Below are positions 3,990-59,835 of a stretch of 64,000 nt of DNA, one piece after another. The notes beneath the pieces were generated by a model. That model made no database searches. It had not been told where the DNA came from and saw nothing but the letters and a program-made list of their open reading frames with translations. The stretch lies in assembly GCA_028023455.1 (NCBI GenBank), contig JAQFVV010000005.1, forward strand, positions 10,726,001 to 10,790,000, in the 5' to 3' direction. The stretch is from Epiperipatus broadwayi. Its lineage: Eukaryota; Animalia; Onychophora. Position 1 is the stretch's first letter; the number at the start of each line of letters is the position of its first letter. Made by a program: the position numbers and the translations under genes.

Positions 3990-4090
3990 GCATTGGTGGT
4001 GGAGAGGTCTGCACAGCTGCCTTACAAACAGTTGTCCTGAGTTAGCAGGTTCGCTTCCTGGCCGATGCTATGACACATGAAAAAAAAAAT
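3990..4090 (+). mobile_element. tRNA-derived SINE-like head with A-rich tail
   Basis: A-box-like tggtggagagg (3997-4007), B-box-like ggttcgcttcc (4048-4058), A run at ~4080-4089. No complete tRNA cloverleaf. Confidence 0.5.
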
Positions 4091-12725: not shown

Positions 12726-14021
12726 ATGTTCCAATGCAGTTTTTCTAATTACACTGCTGCTGCTAAAATAAATATAATAAAACATGAAATAACTCACACA
12801 GGGAAAAAATCTTTCCATTGCTGCTTATGTGATTATGAGACTACAGTAAAGAGAAGCTTAACATTCCATGAAAGAACACATACAGGAGAAAAACTTTTCC
12901 TTTGCCGCGTTTGTAATTATAATACTCCTCACAACAGTCGATTGATAGAACATGAAAGAACCCATACAGGGGAAAAACCGTTCCACTGTAAATTATGTGA
13001 GTACAAGACTGCTGTAAAAAGAAACTTGACAATCCATGAAAGAATACATACAGGGGAAAAGCCTTTCAACTGCAACTTATGCAATTATAAGACAACTACT
13101 AAAAAGTGTTTAAAAATACATGAAGCAGCACATACAGGATTAAAAGCATGTGAAAGAATACATACAGGGGAACAGCATTTCAACTGCAACTTATGCAATT
13201 ATAAGACAACTACTAAAAAGTGTTTAAAAATACATGAAGCAGCACATACAGGATTAAAACCATATCAATGCAGCTTATGTGAATACAAGACTGCTGCAAA
13301 ACGAAACTTGAAAATCCATGAAAGAGCACATACAGGCGAAAAGTCTTTCAACTGTAACTTTTGTAATTATAAAACAACTTGGAAAAGTCATTTCGAAGAG
13401 CATGAAAGAATACATACCGGAGAAAAACCGTTTCATTGTAAATGGTGTGCTTATAAAACTGGTGTAAAAAGAAATCTAATTAAACATGAAAAAACACATA
13501 CAAAAGAAAAATCTTTCCACTGCCAATTGTGTCGTTTCAAAACTGGTAGAAAATACAGTTTAAAAATTCATGAAATAACACATACAGGAGAAAAGCCTTT
13601 CCATTGCAGTTTTTGCAATTTTAAAACTGGTGTCATGGGGCATTTAAGAGTGCATCTAAGAATCCATACTGGAGAAAAACCTTTTCATTGCCAATTGTGT
13701 AATTACAAGACTGCTGTAAAAAATAGTTTAAGACAACATGAAAAAGTACATAGAGAAAATAAACTTCCCAGAAGACCATATGTCAACAGACTAGTTTCCC
13801 AAAGTTCTTTGATAAATTGTAAAAAATATACTCTTGAAAAACATTTTCTGAAGCTTAATCAAACTAAATATGAAGATGACATGCAAGTTTGTCATAGTAT
13901 TAAAGTGTTCAATTGTTGTTTGTGTGATTATAAAGGCAATGACAGATGTACCATAGATAAGCATGAAGCTAGCCATTTTACTGACCATGATACTATTGTG
14001 ATCCTTATACAATTCATATGA
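12726..14021 (+). CDS. Multi-C2H2 (Kruppel-type) zinc-finger protein, 431 aa; 12 tandem fingers (first degenerate) plus one isolated C-terminal finger
   Basis: Uninterrupted ORF with repeated F-x-C-x2-C-x12-H-x3-H fingers and TGEKP-type linkers. The true 5' end or upstream exons are not determined. Confidence 0.9.
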   Translation: MFQCSFSNYTAAAKINIIKHEITHTGKKSFHCCLCDYETTVKRSLTFHERTHTGEKLFLCRVCNYNTPHNSRLIEHERTHTGEKPFHCKLCEYKTAVKRNLTIHERIHTGEKPFNCNLCNYKTTTKKCLKIHEAAHTGLKACERIHTGEQHFNCNLCNYKTTTKKCLKIHEAAHTGLKPYQCSLCEYKTAAKRNLKIHERAHTGEKSFNCNFCNYKTTWKSHFEEHERIHTGEKPFHCKWCAYKTGVKRNLIKHEKTHTKEKSFHCQLCRFKTGRKYSLKIHEITHTGEKPFHCSFCNFKTGVMGHLRVHLRIHTGEKPFHCQLCNYKTAVKNSLRQHEKVHRENKLPRRPYVNRLVSQSSLINCKKYTLEKHFLKLNQTKYEDDMQVCHSIKVFNCCLCDYKGNDRCTIDKHEASHFTDHDTIVILIQFI

Positions 14022-24497: not shown

Positions 24498-24837
24498 ACA
24501 TTCAAATGTTGCAGTAAAATTTAAAAAAAAAAAAAATTCTTCAATATTTTCTGATAAAATTAAATATATTTGATCAATAATGAATATAAAAAAACAAACT
24601 CAACATTTATCAGATTGATAATTCTATATAAAATATTTCTGATAAGTTAATTCAGATATTTTATTTAAACATCTAAAATACAAGGAATAAATCCTTTATG
24701 TTGCTTTTGCAAATTAAAAACAAATCCTAGATATGATATAGAACAAAACATCTATCCAACAACAAAACAATACATGACTACAGCTGCAATACAATCATAA
24801 CATACAAAAGCTCCCCTCAGCAATTTTTAAAAAAGAA

Positions 24838-25035
24838 AAGGCTAAAGAATATAATAATGCTAATAATAGGAGAGATGACAGATCTGCATTATCTGTTCAT
24901 TACTTAAAATATGGACATAGAATAGATTGTGTTAAGAATATAAGACCATTAAATTATATTAAAGAAATTAATAGAAGGAAGATATATGAAACTAATTACA
25001 TTAATTATAACAGAAATAATTGTATGAACATTTAT
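24838..25035 (+). mobile_element. Penelope-like GIY-YIG endonuclease C-terminal fragment
   Basis: Open frame translates KAKEYNNANNRRDDRSALSVHYLKYGHRIDCVKNIRPLNYIKEINRRKIYETNYINYNRNNCMN. This matches the PLE pattern R/K-x-KEH...SAL-x2-H-x4-GH-x2-D...RR-x3-E-x2-YI...MN. The N-terminal GIY/YIG part is not intact. Confidence 0.7.
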
Positions 25036-25545
25036 AAAATGTCAATTAATTTAACTAATAATTGGATAATGAAAAATGGATGGAGGGTTACATATTATGT
25101 TATTATCAAGATATTAAAGCATAAATTATAGGCTTGTGTTAATTTTATACAGAGCCAGTAGATGTTACTATGTATGCAATATAGGTTATTTTTGCAGTTA
25201 ACCAAGACATATTGAAAAGGACAAAAAATTAAAAATTGCCAAAAAGAGCCCCCATATGCCACAATTACATGACTATATGACAGCTATTGTCATACACTAC
25301 CCTGCTGCTAGATAGATATCCCAATCCATATCATATCTAGGATCTATTTTTAGATAACTTATTGTAGAATATTTACTGAATGAATCTAAAACTTCATTTA
25401 AATGTTCCTTCTGCTTACTGTTAAGGAATTAGACACTTAAATAGTGTAAAAAACAGTGAGGATTGCCAATTCCTCTACAAGCTTTATGATAAATGCTTAG
25501 CCAGAGCCAGCACTTAAAATATCTCTGTCAGAAACCCCTCCCCAA

Positions 25546-25588
25546 ACCCCTGACCATGGTTTCGTGCTTTGGCACTCCTCAGAGAGGT
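25546..25588 (-). ncRNA. Type I hammerhead ribozyme, unit 1
   Basis: Minus strand reads ACCUCU-CUGAGGA-GUGC-CAAA-GCAC-GAAA-C-CAUG-G-UC/AGGGGU. It has a full CUGANGA/GAAA core, 4-bp stem II, short stem III, GUC cleavage triplet (cut between 25552 and 25551) and 6-bp stem I. Confidence 0.92.
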
Positions 25589-25980
25589 GTCAGGGTAGGT
25601 TCAGACACTAGATCTAAAAATACCAACCCAAAGCTAAGCACTTAGCTAAAAGTTATCTATTGAGAGGAAAATCTGAAATTTTCAGACATGTACATGTCTT
25701 CAAACCCAGCTATCCAACTCAAATAGCTATATGGGGCTGATAGATCTTCAGCCATGCCATATAGTAGTAGTCATAGCAATATAAAATTGCATAAGACTTT
25801 TTGGCAGAGACTATAAATAGTCAAAATAAAAGTCATAGATCAATTCATAGATCACATGACCCTATCTCTTAAGCTTGTAAGTTATAAACAGTGAGGATTG
25901 CCAATTCCTCTACAAGCTTTATGATAAATGCTTAGCCAGAGCCAGCACTTAAAATATCTCTGTCAGGAACCCCTCCCCAA

Positions 25981-26023
25981 ACCCCTGACCATGGTTTCGT
26001 GCTTTGGCACTCCTCAGAGAGGT
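25981..26023 (-). ncRNA. Type I hammerhead ribozyme, unit 2
   Basis: Identical motif to 25546-25588, offset 435 bp. Confidence 0.92.
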
Positions 26024-26417
26024 GTCAGGGTAGGTTCAGACACTAGATCTAAAAATACCAACCCAAAGCTAAGCACTTAGCTAAAAGTTATCTATTGAGA
26101 GGAAAATCTGAAATTTTCAGACATGTACATGTCTTCAAACCCAGCTATCGATCTCAAATAGCTATATGGGGCTGATAGATCTTCAGCCATGCCATATAGT
26201 AGTAGTCATAGCAATATAAAATTGCATAAGACTTTTTGGCAGAGACTATAAATAGTCAAAATAAAAGTCATAGATCAATTCATAGATCACATGACCCTAT
26301 CTCTTAAGCTTGTAAGTTATAAACAGTGAGGATTGCCAATTCCTCTACAAGCTTTATGATAAATGCTTAGCCAGAGCCAGCACTTAAAATATCTCTGTCA
26401 GGAAACCCCTCCCCCAA

Positions 26418-26460
26418 ACCCCTGACCATGGTTTCGTGCTTTGGCACTCCTCAGAGAGGT
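26418..26460 (-). ncRNA. Type I hammerhead ribozyme, unit 3
   Basis: Identical motif, offset a further 437 bp. Confidence 0.92.
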
Positions 26461-28583
26461 GTCAGGGTAGGTTCAGACACTAGATCTAAAAATACCAACC
26501 CAAAGCTAAGCACTTAGCTAAAAGTTATCTATTGAGAGGAAAATCTGAAATTTTCAGACATGTACATGTCTTCAAACCCAGCTATCCAACTCAAATAGCT
26601 ATATGGGGCTGATAGATCTTCAGCCATGCCATATAGTAGTAGTCATAGCAATATAAAATTGCATAAGACTTTTTGGCAGAGACTATAAATAGTCAAAATA
26701 AAAGTCATAGATCAATTCATAGATCACATGACCCTATCTCTTAAGCTTGTAAGTTATAAACAGTGAGGATTGCCAATTCCTCTACAAGCTTTATGATAAA
26801 TGCTTAGCCAGAGCCAGCACTTAAAATATCTGTTTATAACTTACAAGCTTAAGAGATAGGGTCATGTGATCTATGAATTGATCTATGACTTTTATTTTGA
26901 CTTAAATAGTGTGTTTAGATATAAGTAAATCACTTTGATTACTTCTGGTAAAAACATAATTTTATTATCTATCTTTCAAAAATATATTCCATGCAATCTA
27001 AAGTTTTTTTTACATAATTTATATTCATTTTATATTATTTCTGTATTTAATTATTATTAATTTTAATTGCAAAAGTTGAATTTATCATGTTGAATCAATG
27101 AGCAGTTTTTCTTTCTATTTTTTTAGTCATTGGACTATTTTATTTATTGAAATAAAGTATATTACCCACAAAACTTCATAAAGAGGATTTGAGAAAACTA
27201 TTATTATTATTGGACAATGTGTTAATATGAAAAACCTTAAAAAAATTATAAATAATATCATAAACATTAGAATATGCAATTATGTATAAATACAAATCAA
27301 GTTATTTAACAAAAATGTTAACTTTTTTCATTTGCTTTTTATCAAAGGCATGCAGTAGAAACTATTCAAATATTACAACATAACAAACAAAAAATTCACT
27401 TATATATGCAAATTACTGCAAGGGGCATTTAAAGAAATTTAAAGTTGTAACTTCCTATTTACATTTCAATGTAAATAAAAAAGAGGATTGTCTTATCACA
27501 AAGTAATAAAAACTTACAAAATAGCAATTAGGTTACTAATTTACTGAAACGGAACCAAAATTGACTTCGCGATTTAGGCTATAGAGGCCGCCACAAAGCC
27601 TATTGCGTCTGCGTATTTTGCAATATAATTTTTTTTTATTCAATTATAGTCAATACCTTTTGGACTTAGATAAGTTAAAAATTAAGATAGTGTTTTACTG
27701 AAAGTCTGCTTAATTTAAACCAATTTTTAAGATTAACTAAATGTAATATTTATTCATAATGCATTATCTTATGTCAATATTTAAAATAAAAATAATTTAT
27801 CAATGGGTTTCGCAACTTTAGATATATTGTGTTTCATTATTTTATAATTCCAAATTTTAAATCTTAGAATAAATTGTTAAATGAATGCCAAACATTGATA
27901 ACGCCGCCAACAATGACCAAGTTCTCTGTTGATTAGGTATTCTGGCTACATTTAAGCCGAGCTTAATGAAGTAAATATGATTCTGATCTAAACTATTTTT
28001 TTGAATTTATTGCTTTAGCTTAGACGATTGTTTTCTGTTGTGTAGTTATGAAACATTGAATAACTTATTTTTTTACTTTCAAAAAATTCCCCAGTATTTA
28101 TCTACTTTCCGTATTGTAACGATAAAATAAATATTCAATACGATATTTTGATTTATATTAGGTGATAGGTTTAATTTCCTCAGTAGTTCGGGTTTGAACC
28201 CAGAACTAATAATACACAAAATATTAAATGAAATCGACATGCATGTATTATGTGATCTTCCTACATATACATTGTAAATCTTCCAGATGTGTATACTGTA
28301 TAAATATCAGTAACAATAAGTTGGTTATAGAATTCCACTGATATCAAAAAGTTTTTATAATAATACTAACCAATGTGATGATGATTGGGATTTATATTTA
28401 TAAGTATTCCTAACAGTATTTTATGTTATTTTCAATCAAAAAAGAAACTCCAGGTGCCAAACCTCAACAGAGAAAGTTTACTCAAAATACTAATGAAATA
28501 ATGATCATCATCACTGCCAGTTATTACTATGATATCCCAACATATTCCCCAGTGGTTTGCATGTTCTCAGAGTTGTGGATGAT

Positions 28584-28790
28584 ATCACATGATCACCATC
28601 TCTATACCAGTGCATAATTGTTGTAAACAAAGGCAAAAACTCTCCATACAGTCGTGCTATCCTGTGCCAAATAGAGTAATCAATGGATGCCAAAAGGCTT
28701 GTGCATAAAATCCCTATCTAGTGCATACTCATCCAATATCCCCAGACTAGTTTCTGGCTTGTGGTCATCATCAGTGAGGAGCCTTGGATC
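28584..28790 (-). mobile_element. Subfamily-B insertion (207 bp, 5'-truncated) with near-intact hammerhead
   Basis: 10-bp TSD tgtggatgat at 28574-28583 and 28791-28800. The paralogous site in copy 1 (~868-885, 'gttgtgatgatttataactag') is empty. Confidence 0.9.
28731..28789 (-). ncRNA. Type I hammerhead ribozyme, subfamily B
   Basis: Minus strand reads AUCCAA-ggc-UCCUCA-CUGAUGA-UGAC-cacaa-GCCA-GAAA-C-UA-G-UC/UGGGGA-ua-UUGGAU. Core intact; stem II has one mismatch and a U-A closing pair; stem III is the palindrome ACUAGU; stem I is extended across an internal loop. Confidence 0.8.
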
Positions 28791-30613
28791 TGTGGATGAT
28801 GTATAACTAGCATATGTGTGTTTTAATGGAGTTATAAACACACAACTGGATTGATAAAACAATAATTTAACAATTTATTAACAGATGTAAGCTGGTTATA
28901 TCTATATACTAGTGATTCCAAATGTAGATATAAAATCAAGCACATCACAACAATTAATATATTTTCAGTTTTTAAGTCTAATAATAATTCCAAAGATAGA
29001 AATAAAATGAAAGTATCACAACAGATAATATATTTTCAATTTTAAATCTATACTAGCAATTCCAACTGCAGTTATAAAATATAACATATTGCAACAACTA
29101 ATATATTTTCAATTTTATGTCTAAAGCCTTTTTAATGCTACAATACGAATATCTTACTGATCAAAATATCTAATGCCCTAAATCATGGGTTTTATATGTG
29201 GTTTTTCTTTTTTCTGTAACTACATTCATCTTCATAAATTTACTTAATGAATATATTTCTTCTTGCATGCTAGACTTGAATTGGAATTACAACAAGATGA
29301 TGACATATAGCATGTACAATATATAGGTTTTTGGCAATTTAGGGTCACTACATTTTTTTTCTTTATTGGAATCTTCCACAGACTTTGACATTATTTATTG
29401 GATTGGATGCATATTCAGAGTCTTATTGTTTAGTCTTTCATGGTAAATAATCCATTACTGTAGGAAAATATTATCATAGCTTCTGGTATAGGTGTTTCAA
29501 TAATTAGCTGAAAAATCTTTTCCTGCACTGGTTATTTCAATACGGATAGCTTGCAATCTGGAATCAAAATATTGTTCTACTGGAAATCAGCAATGAAACA
29601 AACTCTACATCAAAAATGAATGTCTGCATCCTGTATGAATTTCGAATGACTCCTTTTTATACCTCTCTGCTATCTTTCTATCCCCTCTCTATGACATTTG
29701 CCATCAATCAAACCATAATTTAGACCATTCACATATGTTTTTGTCACCTGTCACTTGAACCATAATGTAGATTATTCTAAAATCTAGGACCCTAGAGTAC
29801 AAATATTCCAATGTTCGTTTCTAAAACGTGGAAAACAAACTTGTATACCGTATTATAATGTGTTATAATAAAAGAAAAAAGAAATAGCTGTTTGTTGTCT
29901 TTTCTTTATGTATCCCCATTCCAGTGCAGGAAGATATAAAAATTTTCTCAGACTTTTATTATTTCTAATTTTTCAAATATATTTAAATTTTGATCTTAGA
30001 TTTGAATTCACCATTCTATGTACTATAGGAATAAATATGGTTTTATTTGTAAATTGATTTAGAACAGGTAAAATCAAAAAGATCTCAAAAATGCCTTAAA
30101 ATTTTTTGATTCACAATCACAAGTATTTTTTTCCCTTCTTTTGAAATCTCATTCATTATTTTTTCTACTCTTATATTACAGAATAAATGATCGATAATGT
30201 TATGCATAAATTGCCTTTATAAATATACAATACGATTAAAACATACATTAATATTTTTTTCCATTTTTTAGTCTCCTGGGAAATTTCTTTACAATGCTGT
30301 ATATGCGTACATACACACATTGTTGTTCAAATCTTTACTACTTAATTCATGCAGAATTTCACCCTAACTAATATGGGTGGCACTTAGGTTGATATTGTTA
30401 TAATATATTATCATGAGCAAACATTGAAGTTTTATTTCACAAATATTTTATAAAATATTAATCTAATTCCACAGACATGCAGAAGTGCCTTTTATAGAAT
30501 CGTATTTTTCGCAAACTACTCATTTACGTTATAAAAAGTATATTAGTAATTTTTTAATTTAATTCTGCATACATTGGATACAATGAAATTCAAATATAAT
30601 AATAAAAAGAATT

Positions 30614-33250: not shown

Positions 33251-34409
33251 ATACAATCAGTTTATTATGACAAAAATCACTTACTATCTGCTAATAATAA
33301 ATTTCACAAAAGCATTTATTTCAGCAATTAACTCATTGTACAACAAATTGCTATGGAAAAGAAAAGTAGTAGCAATCTCAATGAAGCAACTAAACCAACC
33401 AACAAAATGGAATGGCCTTGGACTGCATGCAATAGAAACTTTCTACACACAAAAAAACAGTAAATCTACTGATTGCCATATTTAAACGGTTTCCAAACAT
33501 AGAGCAAAAACTAGAAATCACACCCACTGACCGACTCCCTCCCACATATATATATAAATACACTATTGGTAAGTATTGGAAGCATTAAGAATAAAATAAC
33601 ACTTAAGAACCCTATTAAATATACTTATTGGCAAATACATGATTTTCTATCTCAAAACCAAGAAGATAATAATAAGTTAACAGTATTGGGAATAGATAAT
33701 AGCCAGCTACTAAAAAAAATACAAAAGATGGTATCTAGAACCAAAATTATTTGACCTTATCCTCAAGTTGAATCTTAATGCTTTACCTATAGCACATTTC
33801 ATTCACTTTGGGAGATTCTACCTAAATGTTGATCCAATATGTTCTTTGTGTCACAGAGAAGAAGAAACACAAGAAGATTTGATACACTACTGCAGAGGCC
33901 TAGAAAAAGTTAGACAATTGATGTTGAACAATTATAGGAAAGATAAAACCACAATAGAAAAAATGCTGAAAACATTCAAGGAAAACAAAATACTAACAAT
34001 TTGTGCAGCCACTTTCAGCTTATATGCCTTATGGCGTACCAGATGTACATTTACCTTAGGAAACAATACAAGAGGACATCCTAACATATATCATAACAAG
34101 CTAGAAAAACTTAAAGAAAGACAATCTTCTTCCACCACCAGACATTTTTGCACCATCTGGTCTCTCTTTAAAATAAAAGCATTATAATGGAAACACAAAA
34201 CATAATCTCAGAAAAAATGGAAACCCAAAACAGACTAATAGTTTAGAACTGAACTATGAATACCATAACAATTACTAAAGATAAAGACTATTAGAAAAAA
34301 AGTTTTTCTTTCTGTAATTAATGATGAATTCTAGTTTATTAATATATTATACAATGTACAACCTGATATGATGTAACCAATTTTTGCCTAATAAAGTTTG
34401 CTTTGAAAC
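33251..34409 (+). mobile_element. 5'-truncated L1/Tx1-like LINE (ORF2 C-terminus + 3' UTR), decayed
   Basis: 'PTKWNGLGL' motif and zinc-binding 'CSLCHREEETQEDLIHYC...LYALWRTRC'; aataaa near the end. TSD atatgtatttgttt (33237-33250) and atatgtatttattt (34410-34423). Empty site at 2683-2696. Confidence 0.8.
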
Positions 34410-34705
34410 ATATGTATTTATTTAATTATAATTGAACAATTACCAAAATTTTAAATAATTGACCATTCATCAATAATTATATTAATTACATTTGGGAGTT
34501 TTCATTCATTAAAATTTGCATAAATGTTATAATGAGTGAAGTCTGAATATTTCTTGTCATTATTTGTATATTGTGTAACTGCATGTGATTTGGGACTGAT
34601 TAAATCACTGTAACTAAAAGACTCAAATAAATAAATTATAATAGAAACTAATGGTAAATTATTGTATTAATTTTTGATATTATTAATTCTGAGTTTTTTT
34701 TAAAC

Positions 34706-37700
34706 TTTAATTCGGGAAACTTTTAAAGGAGGGTGGGCTTTTAAATTGTAGTATTATCAAAAAGAAGAATGGATGGGATGTAAGAAATAAGCAAAAGATA
34801 GTTGATTCAGATATAAGTGTACATGTGGAGAGGGAATGGATCTGTAAGATTAATGGTAAAGTTTTTTGTAAACACAATGGAGAAGAAAGAATAGTTGGGA
34901 AAGAAGGAATTGTTAAAATTGGATATTTGAATATGCAATGTGGTAAAAGACCAGAAAAATGACTGGAATTAAACAAAGCAATTGAAAATGAGGAGCTTGA
35001 GGTATTAGCAGTAGTGGAAACACATCTAAGAGAAGAACCTATTTTGGAAAATTTGGTATGGCAGGGTATAAATAGAAAAAATATTTAAATATTGTTAAAT
35101 GTCAAGAACATTTGTGGTTTGAAATAAAGAAGGGTAGACAATGGAGGGGAACAGTTAATATATATGAATGCCTAGTTAAGGATATACAGAGTTTTAAAGA
35201 AAAGGGGAAGAGAATAATGGTTCTAGGAGATATGAATGGGATATTGAAGAAATTGATGATGTAGATAATAAGAATGGTCAGTTTTTGAAGGAATTTTGTC
35301 AAAGAGTGAATTGAGCATTGGGAATTTAACAAATATTTATGAGGGACAATACACATGGTCTAGGAATAATATATTCCCTACAATAGATTATGTATTGGTA
35401 GAGAAAGAAGGAATGGATAAAATATGTAAAATGGTGTTTGATAATGAGGAGAGAGTATGAAATAGGGATCATAACTTCATTGTAATAGAAATGGGTAGTA
35501 ATGTGATGGAGAATAGAAATAAAAGTAGAAACAATAGTGAAAGATGTGGATGGAGAGTGAATGATAAGAATAAGTTGGAAGATTATAAAATACAAGTTGA
35601 AGAAGCCATCGAAAAGTTGGTTGGGGATGAGTATAAGGACTGGTGTGGGAAATGGAAAATGTGGCAAATAGGGTTTTAGTTGAGAATATGCAGAAGAATA
35701 AAAGTAATAAAAAATGAGAGCTTAGTAAAAGTGTAAAAGATAGGAAAGAAGCATGCAGAGAATATAAGTGTGCTATTAAGAACAAAGACAGTGAAAAAGA
35801 TGTTAATGCTAAATGGGAAAAATACTTAGAAAAGAAGTTGGCTAAAATGGATAACTATAGAGAGAGGATGAAGTTGAGTAGTAAATTGTTGGAGGATATT
35901 AATAAAAGTGGAAGAGATGGGAGTAAAAAATTTTCGAATTACATTGAAAGGAGAAATGTAGGGGAGAGAGATAGTATTAATAGATGATGATGGAATAGAT
36001 TGTGGCTCTAGAGAAGAATTGGAGAAAATCTTAAATAGATATGTAATAGATATAGAAAAGATGTTAGATGTGAAGGACTTAGTGATAGAAAACATGAAAG
36101 CATTTAATAATGGGAATATTAGGTTTACAAAAAATGCACTGAGTGATTCAGGGAAGAGGTTGAAAAGTGGAATGGCAAGAGGTTTAGTTCGATGGGCAGC
36201 AGAGATGGTAATGCATTTAGGGCATAGAGCAAAAGTAAAGCTATTATTATGTTTTAATAAGATGGCACAGAAGAGTTTTTCCTGATAGTTGGAGTAATAC
36301 AAGAGTAAGATTATTATTTAAAGGAAAGGGTAAGGATCATAGAAAGTTAAATAATTATAGACCGATAGCGGTAACATCAGTTTTATATAAAATTTTCTCA
36401 TATGTGGTGGCTGGAAGAGTTGTAAATGGATGGAAGAGAATAATGTAGTGGGGGAAATGCAAGGATGTTTTAGGTCAGATAGGCATATAGGAAATAGTTT
36501 CTTTGTAGTTACATAACTTATGGATATGAGTAAGAATTCAGGTAGATCGTTATATATGTTTTATAGCTATTGAGAAGGCATATGATAGAGTAAATAGAAA
36601 TAGACTATGGGTAAGTTTAGCAAATTTTTGAATAGATGAAGCCTTTAGTAAATATATTTAAGAAATTATATGAAAATAATTACTAATCAATTAGGTGATA
36701 TAGAATCAGATAATGTTCAAAATGGGGTGGGACTAAGGCAAGGATGCCCTATGTCATCTATTTTGTTTTTGTTGTATTTGAATGAGATGGAGAAAGTAAT
36801 AGAAAGACTGGGATGAGGGATAGAGATACCGTTAATAGGTGGCAAGGGAGTATATACTTTGTTGGGTCTTTTTGTTGCAGATGATATCTTTTTGTGTTCA
36901 GAAAGAAGAGAGGATAGGGAAACTATGCTGAGGACATGTACAAGGGTAAGTAAAGAGATGGGGATTAAATTTAGTGAAGAAAAATCAAATATAATGATGC
37001 TTAATACTGGGGAAAGAGAAGATATAGAATTTTTATTGGGGATATAAAGTTAAGGGTGGTGGATAGATATAGTTATTTGGTAATCATCTTAAGTAATCAG
37101 GAAAATTGCTTGGATGAATGGGAGAAAAAATTGGTAAATGATGCAAAGAAAAGAGAGGCTTTGGTAAAGAAATTAACAGTGTTTTCATATAATAAATATG
37201 ATGTAGCTAGAATTGTATGGTAGTTGCAGGATCAGGGTTAACTTATGGTAATGATGTGTTATGTGTTAGTAAAGTGGTATTAGAATACTTAGAGAAAGTA
37301 CAAAGGGAAGTAGGAAGACATGCATTAGATGCAGAAGTGTGGACAGCAAAGGAGGCAATTCAAGGAGAAATGAGACAGTCAAGTTTTTATGTGAGAGATG
37401 TAAAAAATAAAATGAAAATGTTTGCTAGGTTGCAGTTTATGGATAATAAAATAGCCAAAATAGTATTTAATTGGCTTCTGAGCAAAGGGCAGGCAACAAG
37501 ATGGGTGAGAAAAGTAATGTGGAATACAAAATATTTGGATAAAGAATTTATATCAGTATACTTGTATAAAAGGTGGGATGATTGTGTTAGGAGGATTGTT
37601 GAATGATATAGTGGTAAGGAATGGGATGAAAGAATAGAGGCATTAATAAAGAATAGGGAGTTGGAGAGATGGAGAACTAGTATGGAGAGTAAAAACAGTT

Positions 37701-38604
37701 TAAATTTATATAGAAGTAAATGGAACATTGAGTGTGAGTTAATTTATGATAATAGTGAGGAAAGTAGTTTATTTCGAATGGGATCTTTAGCAACAAGAGA
37801 ATATACATGTAAATGGAAAAATATGGGTTATTTAGTCTGTAAATTCTGTAAGGAAGGCATAGAAAATATTAGGCATCTGTTAATTGAATGTAAATGTTTG
37901 AAAGCAGAAAGGGTACAAATAATGATGTTATGGAAGAATAAATATGAACAAAGTGATTATACAGAAAGTGGGTTATTGATTTTTATGCTGGATTTGGGAA
38001 ACGATAAGGGGGATTTAGATATAAAGGCCATAGAATTTACAAAGATTATGTTATGGAAATAGGATCGAGCAGATTATGTGAAAGCTTAGAGTGGGGAATG
38101 GAAGGGGAAGATAAAGTGGCTAACAGGTTTCTTTTGGCATAGTTGCTGAGAGATTTCTGACTCTGTTTAAAAAGAAGTCGCTGTATATCATATCACTGCA
38201 ACAAGACAATACACATGTAAATGGAAAATATGGGTGATTTAGTCTGTAAATTGTGTAAGGAAGGCATAGAAAATATTAGGCATCTGTTAATTGAATGTAA
38301 ATGCTTGAAAGCAGAAAGGGCACAAATAATGATGTTATGGAAGAATAAATATGAACAAAATGATTATATAGAAAGTGGGTTATTGATTTTTATGCTGGAT
38401 TTGGGAAAAGATAAGGGGGATTTAGATATAAAGACCATAGAATTGACAAAGATTATGTTATGTAAATAGGATCAAGCAGATTATGGGAAAACTTAGGATG
38501 GGTAATAGAAAGGGAAGGTAAAGTGGCTAACAGGTTTCTCTGGGCATAGTTGCTGAGAGATTCCTGACTCCGTTAAAGGAGAAGTCACAGTGCATCACAT
38601 CTCA
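34706..38604 (+). mobile_element. Degenerate APE-type non-LTR retrotransposon ORF2 (endonuclease + RT + C-terminal Cys/His motif); clade uncertain (RTE/RTEX-like)
   Basis: APE motifs 'IGYLNMQ', 'VLAVVETHLREE', 'VLGDMNG', 'IDYVLV'. RT motifs 'NYRPIAVTS', 'EKAYDRV', 'GLRQGCPMSSILF', 'FVADDI'. C-terminal CKFC...HLLIEC. Many stops and frameshifts; last ~408 bp tandemly duplicated (37790-38197, 38198-38604). Confidence 0.92.
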
Positions 38605-42990: not shown

Positions 42991-44179
42991 ATGTTCCAAT
43001 GCAATTTTTGTAATTACACTGCTGCCATTAAAATAAATATAATAAAACATGAAATAACCCATACAGGGAAAAAATCTTTCCATTGCAGCTCATGTGATTA
43101 TGAGACTACAACAAAAAGAAGTTTAACAATCCATGAAAGAACACATACTGGAGAAAACCTTTTCGATTGCAGCTTTTGTAATTATAATACACCTCACAGA
43201 AGTCGTTTAATAGAACATGAAAGAACCCATACACGTAAAACCTTTCCATTGTAGCTTATGTGAGTATAAGACTGCTGTAAAAAGAAACTTGAAAATCCAT
43301 GAAAGAATACATACGGGGGAAAAGCCTTTTAACTGTAACTTATGCAATTATAAGAAGTATGAGTTTAATATTTAAGTTAATTATAAGAAGTAATACTAAA
43401 AAGTCTTTAAAAATACATGAAGCATCACATACAAGATTAAAACCATATCAATGTCGTTATGTGAATACAAGACTGCTGTAAAACAAAACTTGAAAATCCA
43501 TGAAAGAGTACATACAGGTGAAAATCCTTTCAACTGTAACTTTTGTAATTATAAAACAACTCAGAAAAGTCATTTAAAAGAGCATGAAAGAACACCTACA
43601 GGAGAAAACCCATTTCATTGTGAATTGTGTGCTTATGAAACTGCTGTAAAAAGAAATCTAAATTTCCATGAAAAAACACATACAAGAGAAAAATCTTTCC
43701 ACTGCCAGTTGTGTCAATTCAAAACTTGTAGAAAATATAATTTAAAAATTCATGACATAACACATACAGGAGAAAAGCCTTTCCATTGCAGTTTTTGCAA
43801 TTTTAAAACTGGTGTTATAGGTCATTTACGAGTGCATATAAGAACGCATACTGGAGAAAAACCTTTTCACTGTCAAATGTGTAATTACAAGACTGCTGTA
43901 AAAAATAGTTTAAGAACACATGAAAAATTACATAGAGAAAAGAAACTTCCCAGAAGACCATATGTCAACAAACTACATTCCCAAAGTCCTTTGATAAATT
44001 GTCAAAAATATACTCTTGAAAAATATTTTCTGAAGCTTAATCAAACTAAATATGAAGAGGAGGACATGCTCAATTGTTTGTGTGATTATAAAGGCAATGA
44101 CAGATGTACCGTAGATAAGCATGAAGCTAGCCATTTTATTGACCATGATACTATTGAGATCCTTATACAATTCATATGA
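42991..44179 (+). pseudogene. Frameshifted paralog of the C2H2 zinc-finger gene
   Basis: Collinear with 12726-14021 but split into ORFs 42991-43254 and 43451-44179. Lesions: a 2-nt deletion (~43230), a 33-nt insertion with an in-frame stop (~43360) and a 1-nt deletion (~43453). Confidence 0.88.
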
Positions 44180-59105: not shown

Positions 59106-59835
59106 CAATAAACATCACATGATCACCATTTCTTGCACTTGCTTATAACTGTTATTAAACAGGCAAAACTCGCTATACGTATTGCCACTCACAGCAAGCT
59201 AGAGTAATCAGTGGATGCCAGAAGGCTTGTGCATCAAATCCCCATCTAGTGCCTACTCATCCAATATCCCCAGACAAGTTTTTGGCCATTGTTAGTGAGG
59301 AGCCTTGGATCTGAGAGTACTGCACCTAGATCTTAGGATCTAATGCAACCCTCCAGTAGCCACCTTTTATCTTCACTTAACTATAAAACTATGAAAACAC
59401 CCTAATATTTTCAATTCAAGCCCATCAGCTTATATATTCATATAGGTCTGAACTCAGTTCAGTATCTATACATTTTGGTGTCTTTGGTTCTTTGATAACC
59501 ATCACCATCCTATTAGGCAGGATTGGTTTTAAGCCAATAAAATCACATGATCACCATTTGAAAATATTAAGGTGTTTTTAATTTAAGACTCATAGTTTTG
59601 TAGTTAAATTGAAATTAAAGATGACTACTGGAGAGTTGCATTAGATCCTAAGATCTAGGTATAGTGCTCTCAGATCCAAGTCTCATCACTGACAAAGGCC
59701 ACAAGCCAGAAAATAGTCTGGTGATATTGGATGACCAGGTACTAGATGGGGATTTGATGCATAAGCCTTCTGGCATCCATTGATTATTCTAGCTTGCTAT
59801 GAGTAGCAATAAGTATAGTGATTTTTGCCTTTTTT
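59106..59835. mobile_element. Subfamily-B composite insertion: one full ~429-bp unit + ~27-bp wrap-around + ~275-bp inverted arm, with two degenerate hammerheads
   Basis: Exact 14-bp TSD aaactaaactcagc at 59092-59105 and 59836-59849. 'ccaataaa.atcacatgatcaccattt' occurs at ~59105 and ~59534. 59560-59830 is the reverse complement of ~59160-59415. Confidence 0.88.
59683..59724 (+). ncRNA. Degenerate type I hammerhead (probably inactive)
   Basis: UCAUCA-CUGACAA-aggc-cacaa-gcca-GAAA-auag-UC-UGGUGA. Core G8 to A and stem III C to A changes relative to the 28.7-kb copy. Confidence 0.7.

Follow-up and report, generated by a model that had tools for sequence, protein, structure and literature searches.

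The window analysed here is a 64,000-nucleotide (nt) stretch of the genome of the onychophoran Epiperipatus broadwayi (assembly GCA_028023455.1, contig JAQFVV010000005.1, forward-strand positions 10,726,001–10,790,000). At window positions 25451–26831 there is a tandem array with a period of 435 bp, 3.2 copies and 99% matches, as determined by Tandem Repeats Finder (TRF), and each full unit of the array carries a predicted hammerhead ribozyme on the minus strand. A separate repeat search of the window gives spacings between direct units of 435, 435 and 437 bp. The longest open reading frame (ORF) in a trimer of the unit is 50 amino acids (aa), and the GC content of the unit is 38.6%. The original prediction, made from the letters of the window without database searches, described three near-identical non-coding units of 435, 435 and 437 bp that form a candidate retrozyme, a mobile element bearing a self-cleaving RNA; TRF, the repeat search and the ORF length confirm this description of the units.

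The array is bracketed by an exact 13-bp direct repeat, ACTTAAATAGTGT, at 25435–25447 and 26900–26912, which form the left and right copies of a target-site duplication. We number the unit q1–q435 on the ribozyme-sense (minus) strand, with q1 being the complement of window position 26320. The left duplication is followed by AAA (25448–25450), which may be untemplated or may continue the unit imperfectly (q1–5, with 2 mismatches), and then by unit 1 (25451–25885, minus strand, 435 bp), which lies 3′-most on the ribozyme-sense strand, matches the family consensus exactly and has its outer end at q435, within one of two recurrent end sites (site 2, see below). Unit 2 (25886–26320, minus strand, 435 bp) has 3 differences from the consensus and unit 3 (26321–26757, minus strand, 437 bp) has 5, including G-run length changes; the shared variant q354C is among the differences of both. 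Unit 2 also has private changes at q169 and q171 (window 26151–26155, CGATC versus CCAAC elsewhere), which are absent from the other 95 sampled units. A partial fourth unit (q362–435, 26758–26831, minus strand) forms the 5′ end of this long arm.

The other end of the insertion is a short inverted arm, or tail piece, at 26830–26899 (sense on the plus strand), composed of q430–435 and q1–67, i.e. the segment between the two end sites. Specifically, 26830–26902 is complementary to 26691–26763 over 73 nt (100%), forming a perfect inverted repeat. The insertion as a whole is composed of a long arm of 3.2 units and this short inverted arm, which are joined at 26830/26831 through a 2-nt overlap (CT) at the inner end of the short arm, and the outer end of the short arm overlaps the right duplication by 3 nt (ACT). 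Thus, the prediction of a single insertion within an exact 13-bp duplication was right about the duplication, but it overlooked the 70–73-nt inverted arm at 26830–26902.

Each unit contains one type I hammerhead. An exact 31-nt core occurs three times on the minus strand, at 25552–25582, 25987–26017 and 26424–26454, where none is expected by chance, and the Rfam model Hammerhead_1 (RF00163) matches at 25546–25588, 25981–26023 and 26418–26460 with 34.3 bits (gathering score 34, E = 2.3e-6). The RF00163 match is visible only when short stretches are searched, as the speed filters drop it in whole-window Rfam runs, whether these use the gathering or an E-value threshold. The three hammerheads span 25542–25592 (62.6 bits with our own model, R1), 25977–26027 and 26414–26464, all on the minus strand and all recovered by RF00163, R1 and the exact core. 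The predicted cut follows the C of GUC, at q334/335, which corresponds to positions between 25552 and 25551, 25987 and 25986, and 26424 and 26423, and would release monomers of 435 and 437 nt. The cut positions, the monomer sizes, the loop II sequence and the presence of a complete minus-strand hammerhead in every unit had all been given correctly beforehand, and the proposed Rfam search returned RF00163 in all three units.

In the predicted ribozyme structure, the conserved core is present and reads CUGAGGA ... GAAA, helix I is open, and none of the 12 pairs is non-standard. Helix I (ACCUCU/AGGGGU, 6 bp) is followed by a bulge and then by a long rod, helix II is GUGC/GCAC with CAAA as loop II, and helix III has only 2 bp (A–U and C–G), is closed by CAUG and lies wholly within an 8-nt palindrome, ACCAUGGU. 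Among metazoan type I hammerheads of the canonical layout, those whose helix III is weak and palindromic need a second copy for activity (PMC4209133, PMC7229834). Because helix III is so weak, dimer-dependent cleavage is expected here as well: the ribozyme should work best as a dimer, in which two copies in a multimeric transcript would pair through the palindrome ACCAUGGU. In a predicted cofold of two copies (−55.8 kcal/mol versus 2 × −24.1 kcal/mol), an 8-bp intermolecular helix III is formed and helices I and II are retained. Compared with the type I hammerheads that act as dimers in newt satellite 2, Schistosoma and axolotl (HHR_Amex2; PMC4209133, PMC7229834), helix I here has no closing loop and continues as a long rod instead, so that the usual contacts between loop 1 and loop 2 cannot be assigned. 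The fold is kept across three related families, with 93% of cells paired and 4 pairs changed on both sides; only 0–2 out of 500 shuffles do as well, and pairing in slid controls is 27–48%. The compensatory changes in related families of the same genome include helix II as GAGC/GCUC and the palindromes ACCAAUUGGU and ACUAGU.

The family to which the array belongs is large and young. A search of the 5.6-Gb genome gives at least 230 scored unit matches at 96–100% identity, and the exact 31-nt core occurs 5,678 times, as against 0 times for the reversed control. The first 100 core matches fall into ~64 loci, most with a single core, and we estimate that the family comprises a few thousand insertions, ranging in size from a fraction of a unit to over 20 units. 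The per-site divergence from the consensus is 0.49% among 96 sampled units, 88 of which keep the exact core. Five independent insertions were recovered with both ends (the window locus and loci on contigs C12532, C50, C12446 and C6323), and their target-site duplications, of 13, 12, 14, 10 and ~15 bp, are all different in sequence. Examination of 14 arrays, which abut their flanks directly, revealed no ORF inside or adjacent to any of them, and no long terminal repeats (LTRs) were found at these arrays, the motifs of a primer-binding site (PBS) and a polypurine tract (PPT) not having been specifically searched for. Because the duplications differ and no ORF lies in or beside the arrays, an ordinary Penelope pseudo-LTR and a non-mobile satellite are excluded, and the element is an independent non-LTR retrozyme. 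The original prediction of a non-coding, hammerhead-bearing mobile element that arrived in one insertion, independent of any Penelope ORF, is thereby upheld by the duplications at five loci and the 14 ORF-free arrays; the two genome searches it proposed, for copy number and for a linked reverse transcriptase (RT)/GIY-YIG ORF, returned the 5,678 exact cores and no such ORF in or next to these arrays, respectively.

The insertions of the family share a signature of head-to-head arms and two end sites, as judged genome-wide from 30 loci and from coordinate lists. In particular, close opposite-strand pairs are always arranged antisense then sense, in 9/9 cases in one coordinate listing and 18/18 in a second, and the sequences of head-to-head arrays were obtained at seven loci (L002, L006, L009, L013, L018, L024 and L026). 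Ten of 13 outer ends fall at q65–76 (site 1) or q435–5 (site 2), which together make up ~20 of the 435 positions (binomial p ~1e-11). The two sites are ~67 nt apart, and both carry ACT(G/A)TTTATA. All three insertions for which sequence was obtained at both ends have one arm that stops at site 1 and one that stops at site 2; coordinate lists place one end of each kind at 10/12 two-arm loci on contig C1 and at 8/8 on C2–C8, although this tally comes from exact-match lists and is blurred by sister families. The original prediction stated that the ends are unrelated to the cut site, which is correct (the cut lies at q334/335), but the ends are not arbitrary, as they recur at two fixed sites that share a motif. 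We also considered whether the inverted arm arose by snap-back, as a hairpin, and rejected this because the two arms end at different unit positions. Inner joins are enriched near the ribozyme, 9/18 lying at q301–362 (p ~3e-4); tentatively, this enrichment may reflect stalling at structure.

Differences between 28-mer counts proved unusable as a measure of ends (5,445 versus 5,756 at site 1 and 13,490 versus 13,579 at site 2), because sister families share parts of the unit, and the lists were read locus by locus instead. The 28-mers just upstream of and spanning site 2 occur ~13,500 times each, ~2.4 times as often as words from the ribozyme core or q36–81, and some arrays of site-2 28-mers are spaced at 420–423 bp, indicating that sister families share the module around site 2. 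This shared, conserved start-site module of 50 nt (q400–14) is a candidate recognition element.

The RNA of the unit is predicted to be compact. The minimum free energy of the monomer is −148.7 kcal/mol, compared with −111.1 ± 5.2 kcal/mol for 100 dinucleotide shuffles (z = −7.3, no shuffle as good), and folding the monomer as a circle gives −143.3 kcal/mol with 69% of bases paired. Highly self-paired RNA has been described for retrozymes (PMC7229834). In the predicted fold, site 2 is located in a 13-nt single-stranded bulge of a stem-loop, while site 1 is located in the loop of the hairpin GACUA-UUUA-UAGUC.

The retrozyme family coexists in this genome with Penelope-like elements (PLEs) of the autonomous type. 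The GIY-YIG domain model PF01541 returns 10,241 candidates, and from these ~10,000 candidates we sampled 8 loci, which belong to three families that are 44–50% identical to one another and whose copies are 95–99% alike. The PLE ORFs are 780–900 aa long, carry YIDD and GIY...YIG motifs, and are young and intact. Their identity as PLEs rests on the genome-wide PF01541 match and on these visible motifs: hmmscan against Pfam assigned no family to the six intact RT/GIY-YIG ORFs (L043–L048), although PF01541 matched the same places genome-wide, possibly a composition-bias effect in these K/N-rich proteins. One of the sampled loci (L043:4300–9999) is a tandem Penelope-like element with ORFs of 901 and 855 aa, a period of 3,135 bp and a 432-bp spacer, preceded by an inverted, truncated PLE copy at L043:2608–3564; no hammerhead was found in its spacer with Rfam, a regular expression or model R1.

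The anatomy of the retrozyme insertions closely resembles that of PLE insertions. In the latter, partial tandems are accompanied at their 5′ end by a 5′-truncated copy in inverted orientation, and just one of the two ends bears a tail (Craig et al. 2021, PMC8557442). In vitro, a PLE protein cleaves and extends both target strands and starts reverse transcription at two adjacent internal RNA sites without target homology, the tail being the sequence between these sites (Frangieh et al. 2024, PMC11167929). The retrozyme shares with PLEs the partial tandems, the head-to-head inverted and 5′-truncated copy, the one-ended tail, the two adjacent internal start sites, the use of both strands of an AT-rich target, and a hammerhead that precedes the start sites by ~100 nt. 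It differs from them in having no RT/GIY-YIG ORF, in the length of its tail (~67–72 nt versus 30–40 bp in PLEs), and in its start sites, which are U/A-rich loops here and an AC-rich stem-loop in PLEs. Furthermore, the PLE families sampled in this genome have no hammerhead and no similarity to the unit.

Taken together, the array is very probably one recent insertion of a non-autonomous, non-coding retrozyme, most likely made by a Penelope-like reverse transcriptase-endonuclease from a template that was probably multimeric. Penelope-type machinery accounts for the head-to-head arms, the two fixed sites and the one-sided tail, which match published PLE descriptions. In the mechanism we propose, the Penelope-like enzyme would cut the two target strands 13 bp apart, and each 3′ end would prime reverse transcription at one of the two fixed internal RNA sites, here placed at about q65–72 and about q435–5, both of which carry ACU(G/A)UUUAUA in a predicted loop. 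One complementary DNA (cDNA) would run from site 1 back to site 2 only, giving the 70-nt arm, or tail, and the other would run from site 2 through 3.2 units, giving the long arm; the 3′ ends of the two cDNAs would then be joined head-to-head. The template would be a multimeric transcript with differing monomer variants, rather than one monomer circle.

Several observations weigh against this reading. At the locus itself, the Rfam score of the hammerheads barely reaches its threshold, and the assembly contains no empty-site allele or paralogue of the insertion. No sequence is shared between the unit and the 8 sampled PLE loci of three families, and no hammerhead was detected in these loci, either by Rfam on 50 kb (a weak search, owing to the speed filters) or in a second search with our own model and the filters off; matches to ACT(G/A)TTTATA in them are only scattered. 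Among the insertions, a few end elsewhere than at the two sites (on C50, at q324 and q353), the one-of-each tally is subject to the blurring noted above, and the longer arrays may have been remodelled by unequal exchange after insertion. Finally, no sequencing run on record as RNA contains the repeat.

The strongest alternative concerns the template. In this alternative, which is the rolling-circle model proposed in PMC4209133 and repeated in 10.64898/2026.07.22.740005, the 435-nt monomer is excised, circularised and reverse-transcribed round and round, giving a tandem array with arbitrary ends. Such a route would explain why the array is longer than one unit and why its ends are unrelated to the predicted cut at q334/335, and the predicted fold of the monomer, compact and with extensive self-pairing, resembles that of known retrozyme circles. 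However, copying of a single monomer circle should yield identical units in a fresh array, and the units differ. Specifically, the variants q221A, q354C and q432A are shared across contigs and are mosaic inside most arrays; the window array itself has q354T in its 3′-most unit and q354C in the other two, a position that varies across the whole family, and in array C6240 the variants follow a period-4 pattern. The recurrence of ends at two fixed sites likewise speaks against the original prediction of reverse transcription rolling round one monomer circle, which we now regard as unlikely.

The mosaic arrays instead favour multimeric transcripts from donor arrays of mixed composition, circles of several units or template switching, and they do not show circles to be absent. 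A more specific form of the multimeric-template reading is possible, and we put it forward tentatively: the arrays may have been copied from multimeric, uncleaved, variant-mixing transcripts, with both target strands priming at the two RNA loops and leaving a one-sided tail, in which case neither the ribozyme nor circles would be the transposition intermediate and the module q400–14 would be recognised by the Penelope enzyme instead. If so, the ribozyme and any circles would serve another purpose.

We also considered a satellite DNA with a hammerhead, of the newt satellite 2 type, spread by unequal exchange or segmental duplication. Some arrays do exceed 20 units, the period-4 pattern of C6240 could be a higher-order repeat, and word depth over the repeat is very high in small sequencing runs; the four runs richest in the repeat are small contig sets of unclear library type, which give no coverage of the unique flanks and show a very high abundance of the repeat in two coded organisms. 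Set against this, the family occupies an estimated few thousand dispersed loci, most with at most one ribozyme, and the five target-site duplications all differ, whereas satellites of the newt type form long arrays at few loci and lack duplications and fixed termini. As unequal exchange predicts neither the fixed end sites nor the constant head-to-head join, a satellite origin is very improbable.

Even less probable, to the point of being scarcely credible, is that the array is an ordinary pseudo-LTR and part of an autonomous Penelope-like element. PLEs are abundant in the genome, and the hammerhead, the tandem and inverted layout, and the tail are as in pseudo-LTRs. Nevertheless, duplications directly flank pure arrays at the 5 loci, no ORF longer than 50 aa is present in the unit and none is adjacent in 14 arrays, and no similarity links the unit to the 8 PLE loci. 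At L047, 136 nt upstream of a PLE ORF are 73% identical to the unit, but this apparent link was rejected: the piece is an insertion in its own right, 314 nt long, from an older retrozyme family whose copies are ~91% identical and whose core is degenerate. We give almost no weight to the idea that the array or its inverted arm results from misassembly: complex tandem and inverted structures of the PLE type do trouble assemblies (PMC8557442), but the identical architecture recurs with other flanks and other duplications on many contigs, and the flanks in the window are unique and continuous.

The element belongs to a known class. Animal retrozymes were described in 2020, and their mode of movement is still inferred. 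All features that define metazoan non-LTR retrozymes and lend themselves to in silico testing are observed here. Like those reported by Cervera and de la Peña (2020, PMC7229834) and by Li, Clavereau and Pollet (2026 preprint, 10.64898/2026.07.22.740005), the family is built of short non-coding tandem repeats that are AT-rich and contain a single type I hammerhead in each unit; it lacks LTRs, its duplications exceed 4 bp, its loci range from monomers to tens of units, and its copies number in the thousands; and it has a highly self-paired predicted RNA, a GC content below 50%, and co-occurrence with Penelope-like elements. Those papers favour a rolling-circle route, whereas the mosaic arrays here argue against a single monomer circle. 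The original prediction had taken the unit size as a hint of an undescribed kind, which does not hold, as 435 bp lies within the published ranges of 150–450 bp (PMC7229834) and 51–972 bp (10.64898/2026.07.22.740005). The plant LTR retrozymes (PMC4918200) are likewise non-autonomous, hammerhead-bearing and thought to give circular RNAs, but they have type III hammerheads in LTRs, a PBS and a PPT, 4-bp duplications, a length of 600–1000 nt and Gypsy-mediated mobilisation, none of which applies here.

The sequence of the unit family and its ribozyme matches nothing printed in the literature searched. The family is a clear example of the known retrozyme class, and what goes beyond that literature is the combination, in a retrozyme, of mosaic arrays with the two-site, one-sided-tail signature of PLEs. 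A very young and abundant family, with ~5,700 intact cores, here stands beside young and intact PLEs, and its insertions keep their duplications, head-to-head joins, two start sites and one-sided tail. The only study of a Penelope enzyme in vitro (PMC11167929) is in accord with these genomic traces, which extend the pattern to a non-autonomous element. The family also offers a concrete test of circles versus multimeric linear RNAs as template.

Further hammerheads and head-to-head elements are present in the window and at the sampled loci. The older retrozyme family seen at L047 (L047:8513–8826, minus strand, and loci L052–L060) has ~1,552 candidates that are ~91% identical, and it is 73% identical to the unit over q204–339. 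In all copies seen, its core has U for A9, and about half have A for G12; despite the altered core, the family shows high copy number, head-to-head arrays and a spacing of ~419 bp. At window 28735–28784 (minus strand) there is a hammerhead of another family, with 57.1 bits for R1, an intact core (CUGAUGA...GAAAC), one mismatch in helix II and the helix III palindrome ACUAGU; Rfam is silent on 28000–29400. Hammerhead variants are also located near, but not within, Penelope-like elements at L044:964–1013 (minus strand, with an overlapping plus-strand match at 992–1052) and at L045:1864–1913 (plus strand); one has the core CUGACGA and the palindrome ACCGCGGU, and the other resembles the copy at 28.7 kb in the window. 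Two degenerate hammerhead-like matches at window 59263–59305 (minus strand, 29.2 bits) and 59679–59728 (plus strand, 38.4 bits), ~400 bp apart, are arranged antisense then sense, head-to-head, and belong to a different, older family. Left of the insertion, window 24656–25352 is occupied by another dispersed repeat, a ~520-bp piece (3,015 candidates, 87–90% identical) preceded head-to-head by a ~176-nt inverted piece of the same element, in which no hammerhead motif was found.

Elsewhere in the window, the segment 27334–27700 has local paralogues at C5:10674581 and C5:10725237 (81–86% identical), and 34000–38000 shows a strong G-over-C skew of 0.44–0.60 over ~4 kb. A 407-bp tandem of two copies lies at 37790–38586. 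An Rfam tRNA match at 3990–4069 (plus strand, 30.8 versus 29 bits) has a long variable region and is not reported by ARAGORN; it may be a tRNA-derived repeat. Long single-exon ORFs encoding C2H2 zinc fingers are located at 12726–14021 (431 aa) and 43451–44179 (242 aa), both on the plus strand, and the window lies within a cluster of zinc-finger genes.

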